A stretch of 64,000 nt of DNA from positions 106,206,001-106,270,000 of the forward strand of contig NC_043003.1 of NCBI RefSeq assembly GCF_006345805.1. Direction: 5' to 3'. This stretch comes from Octopus sinensis (taxonomy: Eukaryota). The notes under the pieces are model-generated. The model did not search any database. It worked only from the letters and a program-made list of their open reading frames with translations, and had not been told where the DNA came from. Each line of letters begins with the position of its first letter. Positions within the stretch are counted from its first letter, which is position 1. Of the stretch, positions 4,461-62,015 are shown one piece after another. The position numbers were made by a program, and so were the translations under genes.

Positions 4461-4752
4461 TTTTTATTTATTTATGCGCCCTTTTCAAGCCTAGGCAGAC
4501 TCATGGGCCCGGTTTCTATACATGTTCCCCCCAGGTGGACGGGACGCCAGTCCATCACAGCGTTACTCAAGAAACAGAAAGAAAGAGTGAGAGAAAGTTG
4601 GGGTGAAAGAGTACAACAGGGGTTGCCACCACCCCCAGCCAGAGCTTTAGGTGTTTTCGCTCAATAAACACACACAACGCCCGGTCTGGGAATCGAAACC
4701 ATGATCCTCCAACCGCGAGTCCGCTGCCCTAACCCCTGGGCCATTGCGCCTC
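4461..4752 (-). mobile_element. SINE family D (gaggcgcaatggcccag head) with TSD
   Basis: A and B boxes; flanks gtgtttat at 4453-4460 and 4753-4760. Confidence 0.85.
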
Positions 4753-4939
4753 GTGTTTATGTGTAAATGAAATTTAATTTCATTTATTTTGTTTTCAAAT
4801 TTTCTAAACTTTTCAACTTTGTCGTTACAAACTTGTTGCTATCTCAATAACCACTGAAGAAGTTTTAGTTTTTAAAATGTTGATAGTAAAAGATACCAGC
4901 AAATGAGTGGTAATGTTTTAGATTGTTAACACTAACAAC

Positions 4940-5292
4940 ATCATCATCATCATCATCGTTTAACGTCCGCTTTCCATGCTAGCATGGGTTGGATGGTTCA
5001 ACTGGGGTCTGGGAAGCCTGAAGGCTGCACCAGGCCAGTCAGATCTGGCAGTGTTTCTACAGCTTGAGGCCCTTCCTAACGCCAACCACTCCGTGAGTGT
5101 AGTGGGTGCTTTTTATGTGCCACCGACACAGGTGCCAGACGAGGCAGGCAAACGGCCATGTTCGGATGGTGTTTTTTATGTGCCACCGACACAGGTGCCA
5201 GATGAGGCTGGCGAACAGCCACGCTCGGATGGTGTTTTTTATGTGCCACCGACAGAGGTGCCAGACGAGGCTGGCGAATGGCCACGCTTGGA
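4940..5292 (-). mobile_element. 5'-truncated RTE 3'-UTR copy with 3 tandem units
   Basis: (CAT)n at left, gctggatgcccttcctaacgccaacc-type core, units of about 61 bp at 5101-5290. Confidence 0.85.
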
Positions 5293-5625
5293 TTGCAGTA
5301 AATGGTAGCGTTTTCAATTGTTAATGATCCAAAAACCTTTATTTGCTGTTTATACAAGTATACCATTTCATTACTGGTGCATCTAACGATGTCCTGCCAA
5401 GAATGATCCAAGATAAAATAAATTAAATTAAATTTCATATACACATAAACACAATCAACTGAATTGTCTTTGTACAGAATTGCTACACACAGAATTGTCA
5501 GCACTGAATTGCCACATGTAGAATTGTTGGTTCATGGTTTTTCACAGAATGCTGGAAACAAACAATATCACTTTTATGACAGTGATGCTCATTTACAAGA
5601 CAATGGTACACACACACACACATAA

Positions 5626-9124: not shown

Positions 9125-9215
9125 AATGATTTTTACGCAGTCACTATCATGAACTGCACAAGTCACTGTACCCATCAAGAAGGATTCACCTCCACTCCGA
9201 GAAAACTGCGAAAAT
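9125..9215 (-). CDS. SH3PX1: Sorting nexin pre-PX exon (R-FSQFSRSGGESFLMGTVTCAVHDSDCVKII)
   Basis: 91 nt, phase 2-0; ttctttttcag acceptor, gtaaat donor; matches the family RFSxFxxSGGExF/YxxG motif. Confidence 0.93.
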
Positions 9216-10530: not shown

Positions 10531-10917
10531 CTCTATTTACTTGTTTCAGTCAATTTGACTGCGGCCATGCTGGTGCACCGCCTTTAATCGAGCAACTCAA
10601 CATCAGGACTTATTCTTTGTAAGCCCAGTACTTATTCTATCAGTCTCTTTTGCCGAACCGTTAAGTGACGGGGACATAAACACACCAGCATCGGTTGTCA
10701 AGCAATGCTAGGGGGACAAACACAGACACACAAACATACACGCACATACATATATACGGGCTTCTTTCAGTTTTCGTCTACCAAATCCACTCACAAGGCT
10801 TTGGTTGGCCCAAGGCTATAGTAGAAGACACTTGCCCAGGGTGCCACGCAGTGGGACTGAACCCGGAACCATGTGGTTGGTAAACAAGCTACTTGCCACA
10901 CAGCCACCCCTGCGCCT
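10531..10917 (-). mobile_element. SINE family A, full length
   Basis: Matches 896-1298. Confidence 0.9.
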
Positions 10918-11770
10918 ATATATCTTTTCCTTCTGGAATCTGTTAAATAACAACTACCAGTAATACACTGGAACAGACTTTTTTAATTACATCCCAACAA
11001 ACCTCCTACAACACTAAAACCAAGCACAAAATACTTTCATAAGAAATAAGTATTTTCTTTTCTGAAAGTAATTAAGAATCAACACATTTGTTAGTCTTAT
11101 ATTAAGACTAATCTGTCGAGAATAATCACACAGCAGGTTACATTTAAGGTCTGATAGAAACTAGAGAAATCGATTCAAAATTTTTATATTTTGTATAATT
11201 CAGAAAGAACTCAATTGTGATATGACATTGTGGATAGGTGGATAGAATGTGCTTGTGTCTAACATGTAGATTAAAATGAGCATGTAGACAAGTTCACAAA
11301 ATGCAACTCTGATAATCTTCTCAAATTTTGCTTATACTTGCTCAAGGCAAGAACAAGAAGTAAAAGTACAGCAGTAGTGAGCTTTTGTGTCTAACCATTT
11401 CACTTCATAAAGCCATTTCATTTTGCTTTTATCCTTGACACTCTTGTGAAAATAACGATCCTCATACAATTTTATTTGCATCCCCCATCTTTCAAATTGA
11501 AAACCTTGTGTGCATAAAAGAAATCAATGGTCATCATAATATATCACAGGATACAGAATTGGTAGCATTGTAAAATGTGGTTCGTTAGTGTTCTACTAAA
11601 AGCCATGCAGTTGTTACAGGGTGAAGAATTGAGTTGTGGTGCCATATGTCTTGAGTGCTTTGTTGCAATGGGACAGAATATATGCACATTATGGAGTGCT
11701 GGCTGCTTTTGCTTTTTAACAAGAAATAAAGGTGACGGCATTGGTGGCAGAGTGCGTTTCCTCATCTTAC

Positions 11771-11920
11771 ATGACTGAGTCTCTTGATGCTTGAGAGACA
11801 GACGATGGTGTACGTTTAACTGGGCCACGAGATAAACTGCTTCGGAATGCTGGAGATTCGTTTGGAATGTCTGCTGTACACATTGGGAATATTTTGGACA
11901 TGGGCCAAAATGCTAAACTA
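11771..11920 (-). CDS. SH3PX1: Candidate alternative cassette exon of the sorting nexin (SLAFWPMSKIFPMCTADIPNESPAFRSSLSRGPVKRTPSSVSQASRDSV)
   Basis: 150 nt, phase 2-2, open in the required frame; attctttttcag acceptor after an AG-free pyrimidine-rich tract of about 120 nt; gtaaga donor; non-repetitive. No homology support. Confidence 0.5.
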
Positions 11921-12390
11921 CTGAAAAAGAATAGGGTTAAAAATAGGAAGAAGAAAAAAAGGAATGAAGAATAAAAATAGGAAGAATGAATAGAAAGCAA
12001 GATTAGGTTACAATGAAAAAAAATTCAAGAAAAAAATAAGTCACTGGAGGGTGATTGAAATGTTTGTTTCTTGGATAAATCAACGAATGATAGAGAATGG
12101 AGTCAAGTTTGCCATATAAAACAGGATTTCAAAGTTTCAAATATTAAAGACAAAGAAAGAAAGTAGAAAAAAAAAATAGAACCTAAGAAATTAATGTTGA
12201 TCCCTATCAGGAAGAACTAGAATTGCTTCCTGTGTTAATGAATATAAAGTCCAATAATAACCATTTGTTATAATTAAACAGAAAGAATTGGAAGAACCCA
12301 GAGATAATTCTCACACAGAATAGTTCCATTTGTAGCAGAGGAGATGTTATGCAAAATACATTGCTTTAGGAAATGCAAATAAGTGCAAAC

Positions 12391-12777
12391 TCTTTTATTC
12401 TTTTACTTGATTCAGTCATCTGACTGCGGTCATGCTGGAGCACTGCCTTCAGTCGAACAAATCAACCCCAGAGCTTATTCTTTGTAAGCCTGGTACTTAT
12501 TCTATCAGTCACTTTTGCCAAACCACTAAGTTACGGGGATGTAAACACACCAGCATCAGTTCTCACAGACACACAAACATATACGCACACACATACATAT
12601 ATATATATATATACGATGGGCTTCTTCCAGTTTCCATCAACCAAATCCACTCACAAGGCTTTAGTCGGCCCGAGGCTATAGTAGAAGACATTTGCCCAAG
12701 GTGCCACGCAGTGGGACCGAGCCTGGGACCATGTGGTTGGTAAGCAAGCTACTTACCACACATCCAATCCTGCGCCT
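12391..12777 (-). mobile_element. SINE family A
   Basis: Matches 896-1298 with a central deletion. Confidence 0.85.
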
Positions 12778-13424
12778 ACACTGGCATAGAAAAAAAATTC
12801 TATTTAACCCATTTAACTTCTCAATGTTTCAATCAAATCTCAACAAACACTTTAATCCTTTTAAAAGCAATCCAGATGAAACCAAAATTGGTTCCATGAC
12901 GCAAAACTTCCAGTCTTTAAATCAACAATGTTCTTTATAATGTTAACTAAGAAAAGTCAGGTATTTTACTAAATCTATTGCAATTCTTGGGTGGTATAGT
13001 TCATTAGAAATTTGGTAATGAGGAAATGCTAAAATCCCACTTTTAAAGGAGACTTATGCTGCTTAAAGGCCATTTTGACTGAAGAGACATTGTGCTTACC
13101 ATTAACCAATAAATGTGAATAGTTTTACTTTGAAATTCTGATTGAGTGTATAATTTAGTGAGTTGGTTCAGGTATGGCTGTGTGGTTAAGAAGCTTGCCT
13201 TGCAACCATGTGGTTTCAGGTTCAATCCCACTGTGTGACACTTAGGGCAAGTGTCTCCTACTATAGCCCCAGGCTGACCAATGCCTTGTGAGTGAATCTT
13301 GTAGATGGAAACAGAGTAGAGGTTCATTTTATAATTAGAATGTGGTAGAATCCTTCAATTGATTGTGGTAAAGACAGTTGGATGGTATTTTGCATAAACA
13401 ATGCTTTCTGGACTGGTGGTACGT

Positions 13425-13728
13425 AAAAAGCACTATCCGACTCGTGGCTGATGCCAGCGCCGCCTCGACTGGCTTCCGTGCTGGTGGCACGTAAAATGCA
13501 CTAATCCGACCGTGGCCGTTGCCAGCCTCGCCTGGCACCTGTGCAGGTGGCACGTAAAAAGCACCCACTACACTCACGGAGTGGTTGGCGTTAGGAAGGG
13601 CATCCAGCTGTAGAAACATTGTGAGATAAAACTGGAGCCTGGTGCAGCCTTCTGGCTTCCCAGATCCCCGGTCGAACCGTCCAACCCATGCCAGCAAGGA
13701 GAATGGACGTTAAACGATGTTGATGATG
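13425..13728 (+). mobile_element. RTE 3'-UTR copy
   Basis: Same core and units; tail gatgttgatgatg. Confidence 0.85.
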
Positions 13729-15079: not shown

Positions 15080-15562
15080 CAAGTACCCTTGATGCATCAG
15101 GTGATATGATATGCTTGAGAAGACCTGTTGAGTCGAGTAAAACCAAAATTGTAGCTGTGGCCAGTGCCCCCTGATTGGCTCCTGTTCTGATGGCACGTAA
15201 AATGCATCATCCAAACATGGTCAATGCCAGTGCCCCCTGATTGGCTCCTGTGCCGGTGGTACATAAAAAGCACCATCTGAACATGGTTGATGCCAGGTTC
15301 ACCTGACTGGCTTCCGTGCTGGTGGCATGTAAAAAGCATCACCTGACCGTGGCCCATGCCAGTGCTCTCTGACTGGCTTCCATGTCAGTGGCATGTAAAA
15401 AAGCACCCTCTACACTCTCGGAGTGGTTGGCATTAGGAAGGGCACCCAGCTGTAGAAACTGCCAGATCAGATTGGAGCCTGGTGCAGCCTTCTGGCTTGC
15501 AAGACCTCAGTCAAACCGTCCAACCCATGCCAGCATGGAAAACGGACATTAAACGATGATGA
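15080..15562 (+). mobile_element. RTE 3'-UTR copy with 4-5 tandem units
   Basis: Same core; gatgatg tail. Confidence 0.85.
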
Positions 15563-19892: not shown

Positions 19893-20005
19893 CTGCTGTA
19901 ATTCTTTTTTATGGTGCCATAGCTAGCTGTGTGTAGTGTGGAGTTCTTGGTCTCGTGTGATTGGATTGATTGGGAGTCTGGTTGGTGATTGTTGTTAGTG
20001 ACATT
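19893..20005 (-). CDS. SH3PX1: Sorting nexin linker exon (NVTNNNHQPDSQ...ASYGTIKKNYS-R)
   Basis: 113 nt, phase 0-2; tttttgtttcag acceptor, gtatgg donor; GTIKKNYSR matches the family GTVKKxxNRF motif and joins in frame to exon 9215. Confidence 0.88.
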
Positions 20006-20594: not shown

Positions 20595-21075
20595 CATCAT
20601 TGTCTAACGTCCGTTTTCCATGCAAGTATAGGTTGGATGGTTTGACTAGGGACTGGCAAGCCATGAGGCCGCGCCAGGGTCCAATCTGATCAGGCAATGT
20701 TTCTACAGCCGGACGCCCTTTCTAATGCTTTTTATGTGCGCCACTGGCATGGGAGCCAATCAGGCAGCACTGGCATCGGACACATTCGGATGGTGCTTTT
20801 TACGTGCTACCAGCACAGGAGCCAGTCTGGGGGAGTGGGGACTGACATCGACCGCGTTTGGATGGTGCTTTTCATGCACCACCGACACGGGGGGCGAGTC
20901 AGGCAGCACAGGCAATGACCCATGCATGAATGGTGCTTATTGCGTGCCACCATCTTGAGAGCCTGTCAGGTGGCATGAGCATCAGCCACAACTACAGTTT
21001 CCATTTTTGATTGTGATTTGATTTTTGATTTTACTTGACTCAATAGGTCTCCTCAATCATGGTGTGTCGCCTGAC
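20595..21075 (-). mobile_element. RTE 3'-UTR copy
   Basis: Same core and about 4 units. Confidence 0.8.
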
Positions 21076-21954: not shown

Positions 21955-22438
21955 CAACCTGCTTGAGGAGACCTATTGAGTCAAGTACAACATCAACAAC
22001 AATATCAAAATCAAATCACAATGAAATGGAAATTGTAGTTGTGGTCCCTGTGCCAGAGGCACGTAAAAAGCACCATCCAAACATTGTCAATGCCAACCCC
22101 TTTGCCCCAACTGGTTTTTGTGCCAGTGGCATGTAAAAAGCACCATCCGAACGTGGTCGATGCCAGCCCCCACCCCAACTGGCCCCCGTGTCGGTGGCAC
22201 GTAAAAAGTACCATCCGATTATGATCGATGCCAGCCCCCTCTAGCCCCTGTGCCGGTGGAACATAAAAAGCACCCACTACACTCTCTGAGTGGTTGGCAT
22301 TAGGAAGGCATTCAGCTGTAGAAACACTGCCAGATCAGACTGATGCCTGGTGCAGCCTCCTGGCTTTCCAGACCCCAGTCAAACCGTCCAACTCATGCCA
22401 GCATGGAAAACGGACATTAAAAGATGATGATGATGATG
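21955..22438 (+). mobile_element. RTE 3'-UTR copy
   Basis: Same core, about 4 units, (GAT)n tail. Confidence 0.85.
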
Positions 22439-28640: not shown

Positions 28641-28708
28641 CTGCAATTAAAAACAATCAATGATTAAGACTCCTTCATTTTTATATTGATGAAATAACAA
28701 AACACAAT

Positions 28709-29050
28709 CTCTCTCTTTTCTTTTTTACTTGTTTTAGTCATTTGACTACGGCCATGCTGGAGCACTGCCTTTAGTCGAGCAGATCGGCCCCGGGATTTAT
28801 TCTTTGTAAGCCCAGTACTTATTCTATCAGTCTCTTTTGCCAAACCGCTAAGTGACGGGGACATAAACACACCAGCATCGGTTGTCAAGCAATGCTAGGG
28901 GGACAAACACAGACACACAAACATATACACACACATACATATATATACATATATACGACAGGCTTCTTTCAGTTTCCGTCTACCAAATCCACTCACAAAG
29001 CATTGGTCGGCCCAGGGCTATAGCAGAAGACACTTGCCCAAGATGCCACG
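28709..29050 (-). mobile_element. SINE family A, 5'-truncated, about 70 nt upstream of the SH3 exon b acceptor
   Basis: Matches the consensus. Confidence 0.88.
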
Positions 29051-29428
29051 TATCATTTCCTTTTTTTTTTTTACTCTTTATTTGTATTATTCGGCAGCTT
29101 ATTTTTTGATGAACTTCTCCTAATAAGAGGTAAAAAATAGGGTTTGTATTATTCAAAGTACTTCAGTATAATTTCACACATGTGAAACAACACAAAAACA
29201 GACATATTTTTTTATGGGACTGCGGTTAGATTCAGTTTCCTTTTCTTTAGCTGATGTGAGAAATATCTCCCCTTGGATGTAACACCAACCTGTCACAGAC
29301 AGCATCTCCAAATCAACTGATAGCAATTTTCTATATTTAGATGTACTGAGTCAGTTTAAGAGGAAAGTGTTCTTCTCAGACATACAATATCTCCAGAGGA
29401 TATAAACAAGTAATCCAATTCTTTTTAG

Positions 29429-34189: not shown

Positions 34190-34500
34190 CATCATCATCA
34201 TCATTTAATGTCCGTATTCCATGCTGGCATGGGTTGGACGGTTCGACTGAGGACTGACAAACCAGGAAGCTTCACCAAGCTCCAATCTGATCTGGCAATG
34301 TTTCAACATCATGATGCCCTTCCTAACGCCAACCACTCTGAGAGTGTAGTGGGTGCTTTCTACGTGCCACTGGTACGAGAGACAGTCAGGTGGCACTGGC
34401 ATCAACCACACTTGAATGCTGATTTTCACATGCCACTGGCACTAGCATCAGTCATGTTCGAATGGTGCCTTTTATGTGCCAGTCAGGCGGCACTGGTCTC
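34190..34500 (-). mobile_element. RTE 3'-UTR copy
   Basis: (CAT)n, core and units. Confidence 0.8.
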
Positions 34501-36935: not shown

Positions 36936-37434
36936 TACTTTGGAAATTCCTTAATTTTTTAATTCTCCCAAATCTTTAAAATGAATAATGTACAAGTTTC
37001 TGATGCCTTTTGACAGATATTTTCATCTTATCAACTCTGCATGAATTTGAAATGTGAAACTATAACAACAATGTGGCTGCTAGCCATCTGCGACTGTGAA
37101 ATATCATCGCATAAATTTAGATTCATCACAATGGGCCGAGTTTGACAAGTTGTTCGTCTACTAATTGAGGAATTTGGCAGATTCTTATCTTACTGTAATT
37201 ATGAAACAACAGTGTATATCACAAAATGGATGGAATGAGATGAATGGCTGTTAGGACGATGGAGATTTGGCATGGCTGACTGGACATTCAACCTGTTTGG
37301 TGGTAGCACAGTTTCGCACTGGGAGCACACACACACAAGCATGCACACACAGAAATTATATACATATAATTGATTTTTTCGTGAATTCTCCCTATATATA
37401 TCATCATCATCATCATCATCATTTAATATATATA

Positions 37435-38109: not shown

Positions 38110-39868
38110 TAGAAAGAGGGATAGAGTTAGACATTACAATTTATCAATTGAATATGATTAATATAAACACTCATTCACAAAAAGAGAAATATGCTCACAC
38201 ACACATACACACAAATATATATGGAGAGAGAGGGAGAGAGAGTGGGGGGGAGGGAGACATAGAGAAAAAAAACATTAAAACATATGATGCCAAATAGGTC
38301 AGTGTCAAATCAGCAATGGCAAATAAGCGCTGCCAAATTGGCTGTGCCCAAAATGTCTTGTACAGCAAAGTGATGATAATTAGCGTTTCCAAAAGTTTTG
38401 GTTATTTTCATAAAGCTTCATCTCAAAAGTATAAGCAGGCATGGCTGTGTGGTAAGAAGTTTTCTTCCCAACCACATGATTCCGAGTTCAGTCTTACTAT
38501 ATGGTACCTTGGGCAAGTTCTTCTACTATAGTTTCAGGCCAACAAAAGCCTTGTGGATGGATTTGGCAGGTGGAAACTGAAGGAAGCCCTTTGTGTGCGT
38601 CTGTGTGTGTGTGTGTGTGTGTGTGAGTTTGCATGTGTGTGTATGTGTGTTTCTGTCACACCATTATTTGACAACTGGTGTTGGTGTGTTTACGTCCCAA
38701 TAACTTAACAGTTTGGCAAAAGAGACCAACAGAATAAATACCAGGCTTATAAAAACAAGTAATCGGGTTGATTCATTTGACTAATAATTCAATCCAGAGC
38801 CCCAGCATGGCCACAGTCAAATGAATGAAACAAGATTTTTAAAAAAAACCCCAGATATTTATGGACTTCACCACACTTTATGAATCATGGAAGTGTACAA
38901 AATAGTATATTCATCATCATTATCATCATTTAATGTTCGTTTTCCATGCAAAATTTATTTCCTATCATATATATATATATATATATATATATCATCATTG
39001 TTGTTTAACAGCCGGGGGTTGTACCAGTTTCCAATCTGATTTGACAAGGTTTCTACAGCTGGATGCACTTCCTAATGCCAACCACTCCAAGAGTGTAGTG
39101 GGTGCTTTTTACATGCCAATGACCTGACATAGGTATCAGCCACAACTACAGTCTCACTTGGCTTGAAATTTTGAATTTAGTGTACAGCCCCCCCCCCCCC
39201 CAGTACTACGTTTGCAGGCCATCAAAGGTCTGCAAACCCCAGGTTGGGAACCATTGGCCTGGTGGTTGGTTAGGGTGTTGCACTCTCAACCAAAGGACCA
39301 TGGTTTCAATCCCTGCAAATAGGTAGAACATTGAGATCCTGATCTTTCCATGTTGCTCCAATCTCTCAGCTGTAAATGAGTTCCAATGATAATTTGGAAG
39401 TTAACACTGCAATGGACTGGCGTTCTATCCAGGTGGAGGATGTAATTGTCCTTCATTCAGTTTCATAAATTATCCATCTGAACCTAGGTTAATGAATTGT
39501 TCTGTGCAGTAAATCTGCACATGTGCATGCATGCATATGTAGCCTGTAAACAAAGGCTTGACCTGCTAAAATTAGCAGTTAAAACCCCATACCTTAGCCT
39601 TAACCCTTCTATTACCATATTTTGGTTGCAATACATTGCCTTAGCTTCAATAAATTTTTTAAATATTGAAGAATTTAATAAAATTGGAATGAGATGAGTG
39701 GGTGTGGCTTTTGAGTGCTGACAATTTTGCATGGTTAATTGAACATTCAGCCTGTTTTAGCAATGGTTTTTGCCATTCCAGTCAAACATGTGCAGGAATA
39801 TTCACATGCAAATAGAGAGAGAGATTACAACATTAGTTGAACATAACTGACATAAATACTCATACACA

Positions 39869-40232
39869 TTGCTAACCAACCACATGGTTCCGGGTTCAGT
39901 GCCACTGCGTGGCATCTTGGGCAAGTGTCTTCTGCTATAGCTCCGGGCCGACCAATGCCTTGTGAGTGGATTTGGTAGACGGAAACTGAAAGAAGCCTGT
40001 CGTATATATATGTATATATATATATGTATGTGTGTGTTTGTGTGTCTGTGTTTGTCCCCCTAGCATTGCTTGACAACCGATGGTTGTGTGTTTACATCCC
40101 CGTCACTTAGCGGTTCGGCAAAAGAGAATAAATACTGGGCTTACAAAGAATAAGTCCCGGGGTCGATTTGCTCGACTAAAGGCGGTGCTCCAGCATGGCC
40201 GCAGTCAAATAACTGAAACAAGTAAAAGAGAG
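39869..40232 (+). mobile_element. SINE family A, head truncated
   Basis: Near consensus. Confidence 0.88.
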
Positions 40233-40406
40233 AAAGAGAAAGAGACACATAGAGAAATTGTTTGTACCAAGATGTCTCATCCCCAAGTAAAATAATTCAC
40301 TATCAATCTGGTATATAAGGCGGAAATCTGGCAAAATAGGCACCATGCAGGACAAAATACCTGGAGGCATTTCTTCTGATTTCAAATTTCAATGAAACAA
40401 GTAAAT

Positions 40407-40715
40407 CATCATCATCGTTTAACGTCCGCTTTCCATGCTAGCATGGGTTGGACGGTTCAACTGGGGTCTGGGAAGCCGGGAGGCTGCATCAGGCCAGTCA
40501 GATCTGGCAGTGTTTCTACAGCTGGATGCCCTTTCTAACGCCAACCACTCCGAGAGTGTAGTGGGTGCTTTTTATGTGCCACCGACACAGGTGCCAGACG
40601 AGGCTGGCGAACGGCCACGCTCGGATGGTGCTCTTTACGTGCCACCGGCACGGAGGCCAGGCGAGGCTGGCACGGCCACGATCGGATGGTGTTTGTTACG
40701 TGCCACCATCACGGA
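40407..40715 (-). mobile_element. RTE 3'-UTR copy (young)
   Basis: Close match to 4940-5292. Confidence 0.85.
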
Positions 40716-41705
40716 GGTAAATCACGTTTCACAAACAGTTTGAAACCCAAGTTAAAGTTAATTCACCTCCACAAGTTGTCAATCCCCTTATGAAGAACAT
40801 GATCACTAGATTATCTCTTTACTATCTGCTGAAAGAAATTAATATATACTAATTGCTTCAATGAAATTCCACACCTCTTCACATTCTAGCAGCTGATTTC
40901 AAAAACAGCTTGAGATTACAAAAGTATTGCTCCAGCAATTTATGCAAATATTTGTTCTCACAATAAAAATGTTGTTTGTCTTCATCATTATTTCATTCAA
41001 TAAACAATTACATATTTATTGAACAAATACAAGAGATGATAGTGAAAACAATCGTGACATTACAAGTCAAAACAAAATCAAACTCGGGCTTCCTAAAGTG
41101 TTGCCATCAGACAAAATGAAATGCTAAATGTTGATGACAATTCCAATATATGTTCCCATATTTACTGACCTAAATAATGAAAGACTATGATAGAAAGCAA
41201 TAGAAAATACCAGTTTTTTTTTTTAGCTTAAAATGTGAAAATGAAGGAAAAATACGAAAGATTTCCTTCAGGTTTTCATTTTCTAACCAAACTTATAAAT
41301 AGGAGAATTATGTAACACACCCTAGAGATTATGAATTAATTCAATGCAAGAATTCATATAATTTGGTGGTATAGAATTACCAAGTGGAGCATAAAGAAAA
41401 TTATATGATATACCACATGCCAAGGTTATCTAAAGTGGGTTCCATGAAAAAATTCTGAGATTTTCCATGTCAAGGTGCTTTAATAAAATTTTAAAATTTG
41501 ATTAAAAAAATGATATTCATTATTTTAAAACTAATATCTGTTATCTTTTACTCGTTTCAGTCATTAGACTGCGACCATGCTGGAGCACTGCCTTGCGGAA
41601 TATTAGTGCAATGAATCGATTCCCAACTTCCTTTTTTTTAAGCCTGATACTTATTCTATCAGTCTCTGTTGCTGAACTGCTAAGTTACAGATACTTAGAC
41701 AAACA

Positions 41706-41871
41706 AGGCGCAGGAGTGGCTGTGTGGTAAGTAGCTTGCTAACCAGCCACATGATTCCGGGTTCAGTCCCACTGTGTGGCATCTTGGGCAAGTGTCTTCT
41801 GCTATAGCCCTGGGTCGACCAATGCCTTGTGAGTGGATTTGGTAGACAGAAACTGAAAGAAGCCTGTCGTA

Positions 41872-41920
<49 letters not shown>

Positions 41921-42140
41921 TTGTGTGTCTGTCTCCCTAGCATTGCTTGACAACTGATGCTGGTGTGTTTACGTCCCCCGTCACTTAGCGGTTTGGCAAA
42001 AGAGACCGATAGAATAAGTACTGGGCTTACATAGAATAAGTACTGGGCTTACAAAGTATAAGTCCCGGGGTCGATTTGCTCGACTAAAGGCGGTACTCCA
42101 GCATGGCCGCAGTCAAATGACTGTAACAAGTAAAAGAAAA
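41706..42140 (+). mobile_element. SINE family A, full length, with a 22-bp internal duplication
   Basis: tagaataagtactgggcttaca occurs twice; an inverted tail fragment lies at 41543-41690. Confidence 0.88.
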
Positions 42141-45568: not shown

Positions 45569-47036
45569 TCCATCATCATCATCATCATTTAACATCTGTT
45601 TTCCATGCTACCATGGGTTGGACGGTTTGACCATGGTCTGGGAAGCTAGGAGGCTGCACCAGGCTCCAGTCTGATCTGGCAGTGTTTCTACAGCTGGATG
45701 CCCTTCCTATTGCCAACCACTCCAGGAGAGTAGTGGGTGCTTTTTACGTGCCACCGGCACAGGGAAGGCTGGCATCGGCCACATTCGGATGGTGCTTTTT
45801 ACGTGCCACTGGCACGGGTAACATAACTACAATTTCCATTTGATTTTCATTTCGATGTTGATGTACTTGACTCAATAGATCTCCTCAAGCACAGCAGGTC
45901 GCCCTATGATCCAGGTACTTTTGAATGGGTTGGGGCTGGTTATGCGAAACTTGTGTAGGATATGGCCATGAACTCACTTTATTTGCTGGGTCTTCATAGT
46001 TACAGCATATCTCCAGAGGTCTTGGTCTTTCATCATTGCCTCTGTGAGGCCCAACGTTCGATGGTCATGCTTGATCACCTCATCCTATGTCTTCCTGGGT
46101 CTACCTCTACTCCGGATTCCTTCAACTGTTTGGGAGTGGCACTTCTTCACACATCTCTCCTCATCCATCCATAGTACATGACCATACCAGCGCAAATGTC
46201 TCTCTTGCACACCACATCTGATGCTTCTTATGTCCAACAGTTCTCTCAGGGTGCTTACACTTTGTCGTGTGTGCACACTGACATTATACATCCAGTGGAT
46301 CATGCTAGCTTCATTTCTTTCAAGTCTACGCATGTCCTCCACAGTCCCAGCCCATGTTTCACTACCGTGAAGCATGGCAGTTCACACTCATGTATCATAC
46401 AATCTACCTTTCACTCTAAGCGAAAGACCCTTTGTCACCAGTAGGGGTAGAAGCTTTCTAAACTTTGCCCAGGCTATTTGTATTCTAGTGGTGACACTCT
46501 CTGAGCATTCACCTCCACTACTAATTTGGTCACCTAGGTAGTGGAAACTATCAACTACTTCTAGTTTCTCCCCCTGAAGTGTGATGGAATTTGTTTTCAG
46601 TAGTGTTTATTACCACTGTGCATTTGCTGCACACAAAAGCTATCTTCTCAGTTAATCTTCCTTTGATGTTACTGCACCTCTTATGTGTCCATAGCTTACA
46701 CTGGGTACATCTTATGAAGGTTCTACCCACACCTTTTCTAAAGATCAAGCAGGGACACCTACCTGAGTGGGGGCAGTGTGATGTATTCGCCTTCCTACTT
46801 ACTAGGACTTTGGTCTTTACTACATTGACTCTAAGGCCTTTTGATTCTAAACCTTGCTTCCACACACGGAATTTCGTTTCTAGTTCTGGTAGTGATTCTG
46901 CTATGAGGGCCAGGTCATCAGCATAGAGAAGCTCCCAGGGGCAACCCGTCTTGAATTCCTCTGTTATTGTCTGGAGGACTATGATGAATAAAAAGGGACT
47001 GAAGGCTGAACCTTAGTGGATCCCTACTTCTATCCA
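45569..47036 (-). mobile_element. RTE-clade LINE, 5'-truncated and inactive: RT C-terminal half, 3' UTR and (GAT)n tail
   Basis: Translates as GIH*GS..LLYADDL..KTK..YLG..LHGSETW..LRWYGHV..RGRPRKT with one stop and frameshifts; continues into the 3' UTR shared with many short copies. Confidence 0.93.
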
Positions 47037-52184: not shown

Positions 52185-52685
52185 AACATCTATTTTCCAT
52201 GCTGGCATGGGTTCGATGGTTTGACTGAGGTCTGGAAAGCCAGCAGCTGCACCAGGCTCCAGTCTGATTTGGCAATGTTTCTACAGTTGGGTGCCCTTCC
52301 TAATGCCAACCACTCCTAGAGTGTAGTGAGTGCTTTTTATGTGCCACTGGCACAGGAGCCAGTCTGGTGGCACTGGCATTAATCACATTTGGATAGTGCT
52401 TTTTACATGCCACTGGGACGGGAGCCAGTCAGGGAGCACAGGTATTGGCCACATTTGGATAGTGCATTTTATGTGCCACCAGAATGGGAGCCAGTCAGGT
52501 GGCCCTGGCATCGATCTCATTCAGATAGTGCATTTTAGGTGCCACCGAAGCAGGAGCCAGTCAGGAAGCACTGGGCACAGCTACGATTTTGATTTTACTT
52601 GACTCAACAGGTCTTCTCAAGCATATATCGCCCGACACATCAAAGGTACTTTTAAATGGGCCAGAAATGCAACACTGGCATCGGC
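52185..52685 (-). mobile_element. RTE 3'-UTR copy with 4-5 tandem units
   Basis: Same core and units; abuts the SINE-A at 52694. Confidence 0.8.
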
Positions 52686-58694: not shown

Positions 58695-58900
58695 ACTCTT
58701 TTACTTGTTTCAGTCATTTGACTGCGGCCATGCTGGAGCACCGCCTTTAGTCAAGCAAATCGACCCCAGGACTTATTCTTTGTAAGCCCAGTACTTATTC
58801 TATCGATCTCTTCTGCCGAACCGCTAAGTGATGGGGACGTAAACACACAAGCATCAGTTGTCAAGCAATGCTAGGGGGACAAATACAGATACACAAACAC

Positions 58901-58931
<31 letters not shown>

Positions 58932-59095
58932 GACAAGCTTCTTTCATGTTTCCGTCTACCAAATCCACTCACAAGGCATTGGTCGGCCCGGGGCTATAGC
59001 AGAAGACACTTGCCCAAGATGCCACGCAGTGGGACTGAACCCAGAACCATGTGGTTGGTTAGCAAGCTACTTACCACACAGCCACTCCTGCGCCT
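58695..59095 (-). mobile_element. SINE family A, full length, young
   Basis: Near consensus. Confidence 0.9.
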
Positions 59096-59457
59096 AAAGA
59101 AATTATTTTAAAAATCTGCCGATCAAAGTGAAAAGATCCTAATAGAGATCTGTAGCAGTGGGCCACTTTCAACTGTTGGTGGTGCATCTTCTGCTAGAAT
59201 TGCAAAGCAATATAGACAACATGCATTCAGTGCAGCACCTGACTGCAGTCATTTCATTTCATCAGCAGCAGAAAGAGAAGGAAATGAACAGACGCTGCTG
59301 TTGTCCATCACTTATACAACACAGACAAATCAATTTGCAATCAATATTAAATATAAAATCAAATGGATTCACACATGCACATAGTTATGTGTTAACTTGT
59401 AACGAAAGAATGTAAATTACTCCTTTCCTGAAAAAAAAAAAAAAACCCAAGTCACAT

Positions 59458-59623
59458 AGGCGCAGGAGTGGCTGTGTGGTAAGTAGCTTGCTAACCAACC
59501 ACATGGTTCCGGGTTCAGACCCACTGCATGGCATCTTGGGCAAGTGTCTCCTGCTATAGCCCCAGGCCGACCAATGCCTTGAGAGTGGATTTGGTAGACG
59601 GAAACTGAAAGAAGCCTGTCGTA

Positions 59624-59681
<58 letters not shown>

Positions 59682-59873
59682 TGTGTGTGTTTGCCCCCTA
59701 GCATTGCTTGACAACCGATGCTGGTGTGTTTACGTCCCCATCATTTAGCGGTTCGGCAAAAGAGACTGATAGAATAAGTACTGGGCTTACAAAGAATAAG
59801 TCCTGGGGTCGATTTGCTCGACTAAAGGTGGTGCTCCAGCATGGCCGCAGTCAAATGACTGAAACAAGTAAAA
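59458..59873 (+). mobile_element. SINE family A, full length, young
   Basis: Near consensus; inverted relative to 58695-59095. Confidence 0.9.
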
Positions 59874-60062
59874 TAGTATAGCTGTAGGTCAGCTCTGGCT
59901 GAGCAGGCCAATGATCAAACACATCCCAGTCTTATCTCAGTCACAGGGTAGAGAGGACATTATCCAATATGCAAGATTTTCCAGCTGTTCCCACAAGAGC
60001 ACATATTGTAATTTGAGAAAAATTTGACTGCTATTTCAAGTGGGTTGAGCAACCATGTAGAG

Positions 60063-61302: not shown

Positions 61303-61446
61303 ACGATAAAAAAAAAAGGGGGCTCAATCCAGAACCACAACAAACTGCCAGAAGATCTCCTTATTTTCTCCTGTCAACTACGACCATACTGAAGCATTAC
61401 CATTTTGCATTTCTGAATATGAGTATTGTTAAAATAAGTGAATATA

Positions 61447-61843
61447 CTCTTTACTCTTACTCTTTTACTTGTTTCAGTCATTTGACTGCGGCCATGCTGG
61501 AGCACCGCCTTTAGTCGAGCAACTCGACCCCAGGACTTATTCTTTGTAAGCCCAGTACTTATTCTATCGGTCTCTTTTGCCGAACGGCTAAGTAACGGGG
61601 ACGTAAACACACCAGCATCGGTTGTCAAGCAATGCTAGAGGGACAAACACAGACACACAAACATATACATACATATATACGGCAGGCTTCTTTCAGTTTC
61701 CGTCTACCAAATCCACTCACAAGGCATTGGTCGGCCCGAGGCTATAGCAGAAGACATTTGCCCAAGATGCCACGCAGTGGGACTGAATCCAGAACCATGT
61801 GGTTGGTAGGCAAGCTACTTACCACACAGCCACTCCTGCGCCT
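61447..61843 (-). mobile_element. SINE family A, full length
   Basis: Near consensus. Older copies also at about 13165, 16080, 33920, 38435, 43385, 49330, 56105, 57470 and 63115. Confidence 0.9.
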
Positions 61844-62015
61844 ATGTGTAGTTCTTTTCCATCAATACTCAGAGTTTCCTCATTTCCACTCTTAACAGCA
61901 ACAAATGGAATGCGGGTAAAGAATGGAAATGCTGAAGCTCAAAAGAATGGAACTAAAGCCTCAATTTTTAAAAAATGGGTACATTTTACATCTAATGAGC
62001 ATTGTTTTTTTTATA

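Follow-up and report, generated by a model that had tools for sequence, protein, structure and literature searches.

Does an intron of an octopus sorting nexin gene conceal a coding exon that the gene models lack, and if so, what would its inclusion do to the protein? The locus in question lies in a 64,000-nucleotide (nt) stretch of Octopus sinensis DNA, hereafter the window (assembly GCF_006345805.1, contig NC_043003.1, 106,206,001-106,270,000 of the forward strand), whose minus strand holds the 5' half of the single SNX9/18/33 ortholog annotated as "sorting nexin-33". An earlier note, made from the letters alone, had proposed a hidden, frame-preserving coding cassette exon in an intron of this gene, and the segment, its splice sites, the AG-free zone before it, the UGCAUG, the stop and the AATAAA that the note listed were all found at their coordinates on the minus strand. 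Our comparative analysis makes it very likely that positions 11920-11771 of that strand are a real, deeply conserved and unannotated coding cassette exon: the peptide, the 150-nt length, the frame and the splice sites are kept in Argonauta hians and Sepia pharaonis, with substitutions of the coding type. For the reading as a whole, which joins to the exon its inclusion, its regulation and its action on the amphipathic helix H0, we put the probability at roughly 0.72. What is new here is this exon, with its unusual site inside the H0 of a PX-BAR protein; its kind, the conserved alternative cassette exon, is a known one.

Host gene and candidate exon

The coding exons of the host gene were placed by tblastn with the O. 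sinensis protein XP_029639362, at 95-100% identity except in the last match, which reaches 71% over 63 amino acids (aa) and overruns the exon end. The encoded protein has the SNX9/18/33 layout of an N-terminal SH3 domain, a low-complexity linker and a yoke-PX-BAR unit; its precomputed Pfam matches are SH3, PX and BAR_3_WASP_bdg, and its PDB matches are 4AKV (SNX33, E 8e-106) and 2RAI (SNX9, E 2e-99). The candidate exon sits in a phase-2 intron of 10,677 nt (19892-9216). The peptide of the two flanking exons is the same in the window, in O. sinensis and in O. vulgaris; the upstream one covers the N-terminal half of H0 and is kept in Argonauta and Sepia, and the downstream one covers the C-terminal half along with the beginning of the yoke (YN) domain. 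The whole gene spans 135-198 kb in three Octopus species versus 49 kb in Argonauta. The features on which the argument depends are as follows, with a slash marking splice junctions.

35494-35405, 28643-28563, 23958-23710, 20005-19893, 9215-9125, 3701-3579 and 1535-1359, minus strand: coding exons of the host gene
19893-20005, minus strand: upstream constitutive exon of 113 nt, encoding NVTNNNHQ...GTIKKNYS plus the AG of a split codon, with the phase-2 end AGC AG/gtatgg (tblastn and direct reading)
11921-12043, minus strand: AG-free, pyrimidine-rich zone of 123 nt with many UCUU-type motifs, ending in the acceptor ttctttttcag
11771-11920, minus strand: candidate cassette exon of exactly 150 nt, frame-preserving, encoding S-SLAFWPMSKIFPMCTADIPNESPAFRSSLSRGPVKRTPSSVSQASRDSV-I and open in the phase-2 frame
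11765-11770, minus strand: cassette donor gtaaga, reading CATgtaagatgag in both Octopus and Sepia and CATgtaagatcat in Argonauta
9125-9215, minus strand: downstream constitutive exon of 91 nt, ttcag/ATTTTCG, encoding A + FSQFSRSGGESFLMGTVTCAVHDSDCVKII (sequence reading and alignment to PDB 2RAI, human SNX9 204-595)

The cassette acceptor reads attctttttcag/TAG, a NAGNAG site (ttctttttcag/tag) whose alternative acceptor at 11917 would shorten the exon to 147 nt, and the donor reads CAT/gtaaga. The block is single-copy within the window, and its insertion would turn ..NYS-R-FSQ.. into ..NYS-S...I-FSQ... When the entire intron was scanned for segments with an open frame and a length of 30-300 nt that is a multiple of 3, between a YAG acceptor preceded by at least 75% pyrimidine and a GTRAG donor, the cassette and its NAGNAG variant were the sole results, and eight acceptor/donor pairs emerged if frame was ignored. 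For this intron, chance alone would yield some 0.3-0.8 candidates of this kind. Given the eight frame-blind pairs, a candidate drawn from a single genome is suggestive and not significant beyond chance.

Conservation in Argonauta and Sepia

The orthologous introns of Argonauta hians (locus L001) and Sepia pharaonis (locus L002) measure 2.1 kb (L001 38243-40350) and 24 kb (L002 about 30939-55259), and the Sepia upstream exon likewise ends in AGCAG/gt, phase 2. Within the Argonauta intron the sole conserved block (L001 38856-39200) matches window positions 11930-11594 with 77% identity over 351 nt (blastn, E 1e-67), and the 49-aa cassette peptide finds an ungapped match there with 81% identity over 48 aa (tblastn, E 2e-23). 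The Sepia intron yields a nucleotide match of 71% over 234 nt (blastn, E 1e-23) and, at L002 43562-43705, an ungapped peptide match of 50% identity over 48 aa (tblastn, E 2e-12). Annotated exons aside, no block other than the cassette is both conserved and colinear between the window and L001 or L002, the other matches being dispersed repeats. In both species the exon is exactly 150 nt long with its splice sites kept, and a Yn-cag/ acceptor and a CAT/gtaagat donor are common to all three cassettes.

L001 38866-39015: cassette ortholog of Argonauta
L002 43558-43707: cassette ortholog of Sepia
Cassette peptide, Octopus: SSLAFWPMSKIFPMCTADIPNESPAFRSSLSRGPVKRTPSSVSQASRDSVI
Cassette peptide, Argonauta: SSLAFWPMSKIFPLCTTDISNESPACRNSLSHGPVKRTPSSVSHVSRESAI
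Cassette peptide, Sepia: SPLSLWPVSKFFPLCTSDLSNDSPQSCRNFPCRAVKRSASSISQVSRDSII

The pattern of change within the block is that of coding sequence. The phase-2 frame is the sole open frame in the three species; each of the five others, two sense and three antisense, carries 1-4 stops in each species. Octopus and Argonauta agree at 130 of the 150 positions of the cassette with 0 gaps, compared with 47% identity and 13 gap columns in the 100 columns upstream; over the 200 columns downstream, identity is 56-68% and each 100 columns include 6-14 gap columns. Substitutions spare codon position 2 and concentrate at position 3 (differences by codon position 3/5/12, 21/5/21 and 20/6/26; chi-square p = 0.035, 0.004 and 0.002), the ratio of nonsynonymous to synonymous divergence (dN/dS, or omega; Nei-Gojobori) is 0.27-0.39, and a good number of amino-acid replacements are conservative (M/V, I/F, M/L, A/S, I/L, E/D, V/I). 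The check that the earlier note had proposed, namely the length and frame of the segment in related species, thus came out in its favor in both Argonauta and Sepia, with no frameshifting indels in either.

Nucleotide identity of the cassette is on a par with that of the neighboring constitutive exons, at 86% versus 87-88% between Octopus and Argonauta and 68% versus 70-73% between Octopus and Sepia. Relative to constitutive exons 5 and 6, its dN is about 1.3-2.7 times higher and its dS lower; raised dN with lowered dS is a recognized signature of alternative exons.

Position in the H0 helix and features of the insert

The earlier note had placed the insertion at the amphipathic helix of SNX9, and this placement holds and can now be made sharper. 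Aligned by phmmer to PDB 2RAI (chain residues 204-595), octopus S174-R175-F176 corresponds to human SNX9 N206-K207-F208. Human SNX9 residues 201-213 are described, in the summary of Pylypenko et al. 2007 given by PMC5487894, as an amphipathic helix before the yoke domain that is essential for tubulation. The junction K207/F208 falls inside residues 201-213, so the cassette would split H0. In a scan with a 13-residue frame, the helical hydrophobic moment peaks at 0.60 for IKKNYSRFSQFSR and drops to 0.23-0.40 across the new junction.

The insert had been called Ser/Arg-rich, which its composition contradicts: with 12 S, 6 P and 4 R among 51 residues the cassette peptide is Ser/Pro-rich and has no RS-type domain. 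Two parts of it are conserved, a hydrophobic, proline-containing patch, LWP[MV]SK[IF]FP[ML]CT, and a C-terminal stretch, VKR[TS][PA]SS[VI]SQxSR[DE]S, with RxxS and RxS motifs, in which the predicted basophilic phospho-acceptor motifs KR[TS][PA]SS and SR[DE]S are kept. From these features we infer that the insert may alter membrane remodelling or add phospho-regulation.

Flanking introns and candidate regulatory motifs

The nearest AG upstream of the cassette acceptor lies 123 nt away, and the last 60 nt before it are 88% pyrimidine. A distant branch point, such as the cctaatc about 80 nt upstream, is probably located in the AG-free zone, which also contains a tandem-repeat-like pyrimidine unit of 16-19 nt at 11938-11996. 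Corresponding AG-free pyrimidine tracts measure 50 nt in Argonauta and 103 nt in Sepia. The NAGNAG acceptor reported by the earlier note is present in both octopods, Octopus and Argonauta, and is missing from Sepia, which has cag/tcc. Downstream of the donor, two intronic elements were delimited.

11594-11770, minus strand: intronic block kept between Octopus and Argonauta at 56-68% identity, with indels (blastn and alignment)
11594-11611, minus strand: 18-nt block ACUGCAUGGCUUUUAGUA, invariant between Octopus and Argonauta, containing UGCAUG at 11609-11604, a candidate RBFOX-type intronic enhancer

The larger block is likely a splicing-regulatory region, although it is not kept in Sepia beyond about 10 nt (the Sepia match ends at 11761). 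A downstream UGCAUG had been put forward as an RBFOX site, and this too stands in part: the motif is where it was said to be, at +162 from the donor, and is kept in Argonauta at +170, but Sepia has none nearby. With a window-wide TGCATG density of 0.375 per kb, a single copy would arise by chance within 300 nt with a probability near 0.1. RBFOX control of the cassette is therefore plausible for octopods only, given the Sepia sequence. A regulated exon would be consistent with the long AG-free tracts and, in octopods, with the conservation of the intron downstream.

Searches for transcripts and proteins with the insert

Several observations weigh against the proposed exon and its mechanism, among them the proteins on record. 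All 12 proteins in two cephalopod clusters read KKNYSRFSQFSR uninterrupted, i.e. they skip the cassette; they comprise models from O. bimaculoides, O. sinensis (X1 and X2), O. vulgaris, A. hians and S. pharaonis, as well as six decapodiform proteins derived from Logan transcripts. About 80 more SNX9-family proteins, from molluscs, arthropods and other groups, are likewise uninterrupted. A padded full-length query found no cassette-bearing protein, and a HMMER search of the cassette peptide against 1.84 billion cluster representatives returned nothing, although an inclusion isoform could hide behind a skipping representative. Two word-indexed searches for fragments of 44-140 aa, one with an 80-aa Octopus junction peptide and the other with a three-species profile, were likewise empty. 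To these are added the moderate rather than strong constraint that an omega of 0.27-0.39 denotes, the comparison of three lineages only (Octopus, Argonauta and Sepia), the lack of any GCAUG in Sepia before +716, where its first UGCAUG occurs, and the basis of the proposed H0 effect in a hydrophobic-moment calculation and homology to human SNX9.

A degenerate DNA pattern for the core WP[MV]SK[IF]FPxCT gave 0 matches in the metagenome contigs of the JGI, and in the literature we found no paper on SNX9-family cassette exons at the H0 site or on the sorting nexin-33 gene in cephalopods. The negative results on insert-bearing proteins are weak evidence; what the protein and transcript searches do show is that skipping predominates and that any inclusion would be rare or restricted. 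Two of the deposited models in this set look faulty in other respects: CAI9726335.1 of O. vulgaris has an unrelated 50-aa N-terminal extension and lacks most of the BAR C-terminus, and in CAE1332338.1 of S. pharaonis an unrelated 25-aa tail replaces ...KMYENA.

Taxonomic range and origin

Two gastropod loci, Lottia (L003) and Pomacea (L004), were compared for the depth of the cassette. Pomacea has an intron at the same R/F site, 444 nt long (L004 about 4561-5004), in which no cassette homolog was found; in Lottia the intron at this site is absent and the gene has only two coding blocks. Among about 90 inspected SNX9-family proteins from molluscs, arthropods and other animals, none has an insert at the H0 junction, and the xRF junction is uninterrupted. 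The cassette is, on these sequence comparisons, at least coleoid-wide and not evident in the two gastropods, and from the protein survey and the gastropod loci taken together it appears to be a cephalopod innovation.

An origin by duplication of a neighboring exon was considered and rejected, as the cassette aligns locally with exon 6 and with the whole protein no better than shuffled sequences do (590 of 1000 and 76 of 500 shuffles, respectively, score at least as well). A 10-aa match in Pomacea (E 0.03) is an out-of-frame translation spanning the exon-6 acceptor and was treated as coincidence. The C-terminal part of the insert, SRGPVKRTPSSVSQASR (cassette residues 30-47), weakly resembles the H0 region SYGTIKKNYSRFSQFSR (protein residues 164-181, at the exon 5/6 junction), with 8 of 17 residues identical; this resemblance is not significant by the same whole-protein shuffles and is possibly a coincidence. 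Elsewhere in the family, isoform X3 of Crassostrea virginica carries a 13-aa insert, VSFGSLSTQGVKG, in the PX domain after ...PPLPDKALS, without counterpart in the C. gigas isoform, which indicates that molluscan genes of this family do have alternative micro-exons, at sites other than the H0 junction.

Alternative explanations

If the donor were ignored, the segment could serve as an alternative terminal exon, in which intronic polyadenylation would yield a protein of SH3 domain and low-complexity linker with a 50-aa tail and the downstream 177 nt would be 3' untranslated region, an isoform that the earlier note had also entertained. Read-through indeed reaches ...DSVM-stop in three species (TAA at 11769-11767 in Octopus), the 177 nt are kept between Octopus and Argonauta, and an AATAAA is present at 11476-11471 on the minus strand. 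The stop, however, is automatic, because any phase-2 /GTAAG donor creates a TAA, and the gtaagat donor kept in three species would be needless for a terminal exon. The hexamers lie at +295 in Octopus, +109 in Argonauta and +435 in Sepia (ATTAAA), outside the conserved block or at positions in it that do not align, are not conserved in position, and are no denser than the background of 1.8 per kb; the AATAAA at 11471-11476 is probably not functional. With the downstream conservation absent in Sepia, and no truncated protein with such a tail in the protein collections searched, we regard this explanation as unlikely. We hold it similarly improbable that the block is a conserved non-coding intronic element that never enters mature mRNA, whether an enhancer, a splicing decoy, a recursive-splicing intermediate or a structured RNA. 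Such an element would agree with the failure to find the segment in any transcript or protein of the collections searched and with the conservation that reaches into the non-coding flanks in octopods, but it leaves unexplained why one of six frames is open, why indels are absent from the exon only, and why the codon-position pattern and the conservative replacements exist. For recursive splicing in particular, the bases after the acceptor (cag/TAGTTT in Octopus and Argonauta, cag/TCCCCT in Sepia) are not a 5' splice site of the form AG/GURAGU, and the Argonauta intron is a mere 2.1 kb. Three further candidates were rejected: a structured RNA or an editing-complementary duplex, with folding z scores of +0.44 and +0.60 no different from shuffles; a known RNA family, with no Rfam match; and antisense coding, with stops in the three antisense frames of all three species.

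A relic exon, used in the coleoid ancestor, silent in Octopus today and conserved only residually, would account for the failure to find inclusion among the living species examined. Yet lineages up to about 275 million years (My) apart (PMC9068888) keep its length, frame and both splice sites, at an omega clearly below 1, while the surrounding intron has diverged beyond recognition, in sizes from 2.1 to 24 kb. About 275 My of neutral decay would destroy the open frame, which makes the relic a poor explanation, and we consider it very unlikely. Finally, a random AG...GT pair enclosing an open frame in a long AT-rich intron is what the expectation of 0.3-0.8 candidates allows for in a single genome; the orthologs in two other genera, at the nucleotide and peptide E values given above, refute such a chance pseudo-exon, whose probability we take as practically negligible. 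The evidence as a whole favors the conserved coding cassette exon.

Comparison with known alternative exons

Among BAR-domain proteins, BIN1/amphiphysin-2 has a neuronal exon 7 inside its N-BAR and a muscle-specific, phosphoinositide-binding exon 11. The octopus cassette resembles these in being a frame-preserving exon in or near the membrane-remodelling module of a BAR protein that leaves the domains intact; the BIN1 exons change membrane or partner binding. It differs from them in belonging to the PX-BAR SNX9/18/33 family, in splitting H0 rather than lying within or after the BAR, and in being so far restricted to coleoids and known here from sequence. As regards human SNX9, octopus GTIKKNYSR/FSQFSRSGGE aligns to the same H0 element, whereas an insert at H0 is seen in the cephalopod cassette only and in none of the family proteins inspected. 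The downstream UGCAUG at 162-170 nt and the conserved flanking intron of Octopus and Argonauta are as in RBFOX-activated exons; unlike in those, the motif exists as a single copy and is absent within 700 nt in Sepia, and the role of RBFOX is putative.

Conserved alternative exons are recognized by a length divisible by 3, conserved flanking introns, a lowered dS and a raised dN/dS relative to constitutive exons, and, as a fifth mark, transcripts of both forms. All four sequence marks are found in the octopus cassette; of the two transcript forms, only the skipping one is.

Repeats and other features of the window

The remainder of the window is rich in dispersed elements. More than 15 copies, on both strands, belong to a repeat like a short interspersed nuclear element (SINE) that is typical of Octopus, in which spurious open reading frames (ORFs) read ...DRLLSVSVYQIHSQGIGRPGAIAEDTCPRCHAVGLNPEPCGWLASYLPHSHSCA, often beside (TA/CA)n tracts; relatives occur in Argonauta at L001 about 34270-34340 and 37190-37290. 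A second dispersed family contains tandem units of 66 nt (3.7 copies at 15160-15401), and its spurious ORFs read AFYVPPAQVPDEAG....

910-1300, 10695-10883, 12432-12743, 28664-29109, 39825-40295, 41651-41953, 58858-59097, 59385-59881 and 61374-61895: examples of the SINE-like repeat
4976-5504, 13335-13697, 20697-20958, 22011-22277, 40435-40743 and 52330-52602: related ORFs of the second repeat family

At 46085-46865 of the minus strand, ORFs resemble retroelement polyprotein fragments (MLHGSETWAGTVEDMRRLERNEASMIHWM...; ...CTQCKLWTHKRCSNIKGRL...), and this segment is probably a decayed element without long terminal repeats (non-LTR) upstream of the SH3 exon. An 81-nt block with 78% identity links window 29493-29417 to L002 25703-25782; it is not colinear, lying upstream of exon 3 in Octopus and downstream of exon 3 in Sepia, and may be a shared repeat or a relocated element.

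Proposed mechanism and significance

We propose that octopods and decapodiforms, whose divergence is dated to about 275 My ago (PMC9068888), inherited the cassette from their common ancestor and that it has since been under purifying selection. The default mRNA would skip it; in some cell type or stage it would be spliced in between exon 5 (end at 19893) and exon 6 (start at 9215), both phase 2. Inclusion would add 50 Ser/Pro-rich residues at the equivalent of K207/F208, in the middle of H0, moving the basic half of the helix, GTIKKNYSR, 50 residues off and placing ...SQASRDSVI before FSQFSRSGGE. The membrane-inserting wedge should thereby weaken or be retuned, and the insert would also contribute its conserved phospho-acceptor motifs and hydrophobic patch. 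Inclusion is probably governed by the upstream pyrimidine tract and, in octopods, by the UGCAUG-containing block.

A more specific proposal, which we offer tentatively and hold to be possible rather than probable, is that a coleoid splicing switch kept for about 275 My cuts the H0 of the single SNX9-family protein and so produces a cell-type-specific, plausibly neural or sensory, isoform whose tubulating wedge is disabled or phospho-regulated via KR[TS]xSS and SR[DE]S. If true, this would be the first case in which splicing directly toggles the curvature-generating helix of a PX-BAR protein. Should the cassette never reach mRNA, its long-term conservation of the coding type would itself need explanation.

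For annotation, the gain is an exon and isoform that the annotated models of five cephalopods lack (three species of Octopus plus Argonauta hians and Sepia pharaonis), and an intron-by-intron comparison of orthologs can bring to light exons that are rare or tissue-restricted in repeat-rich cephalopod genomes. Placed at the most mechanistically sensitive position of the SNX9 family, the exon would provide a natural variant for the part that H0 plays in endocytic neck formation, and it stands as a candidate lineage-specific innovation in the membrane trafficking of animals with very large nervous systems.

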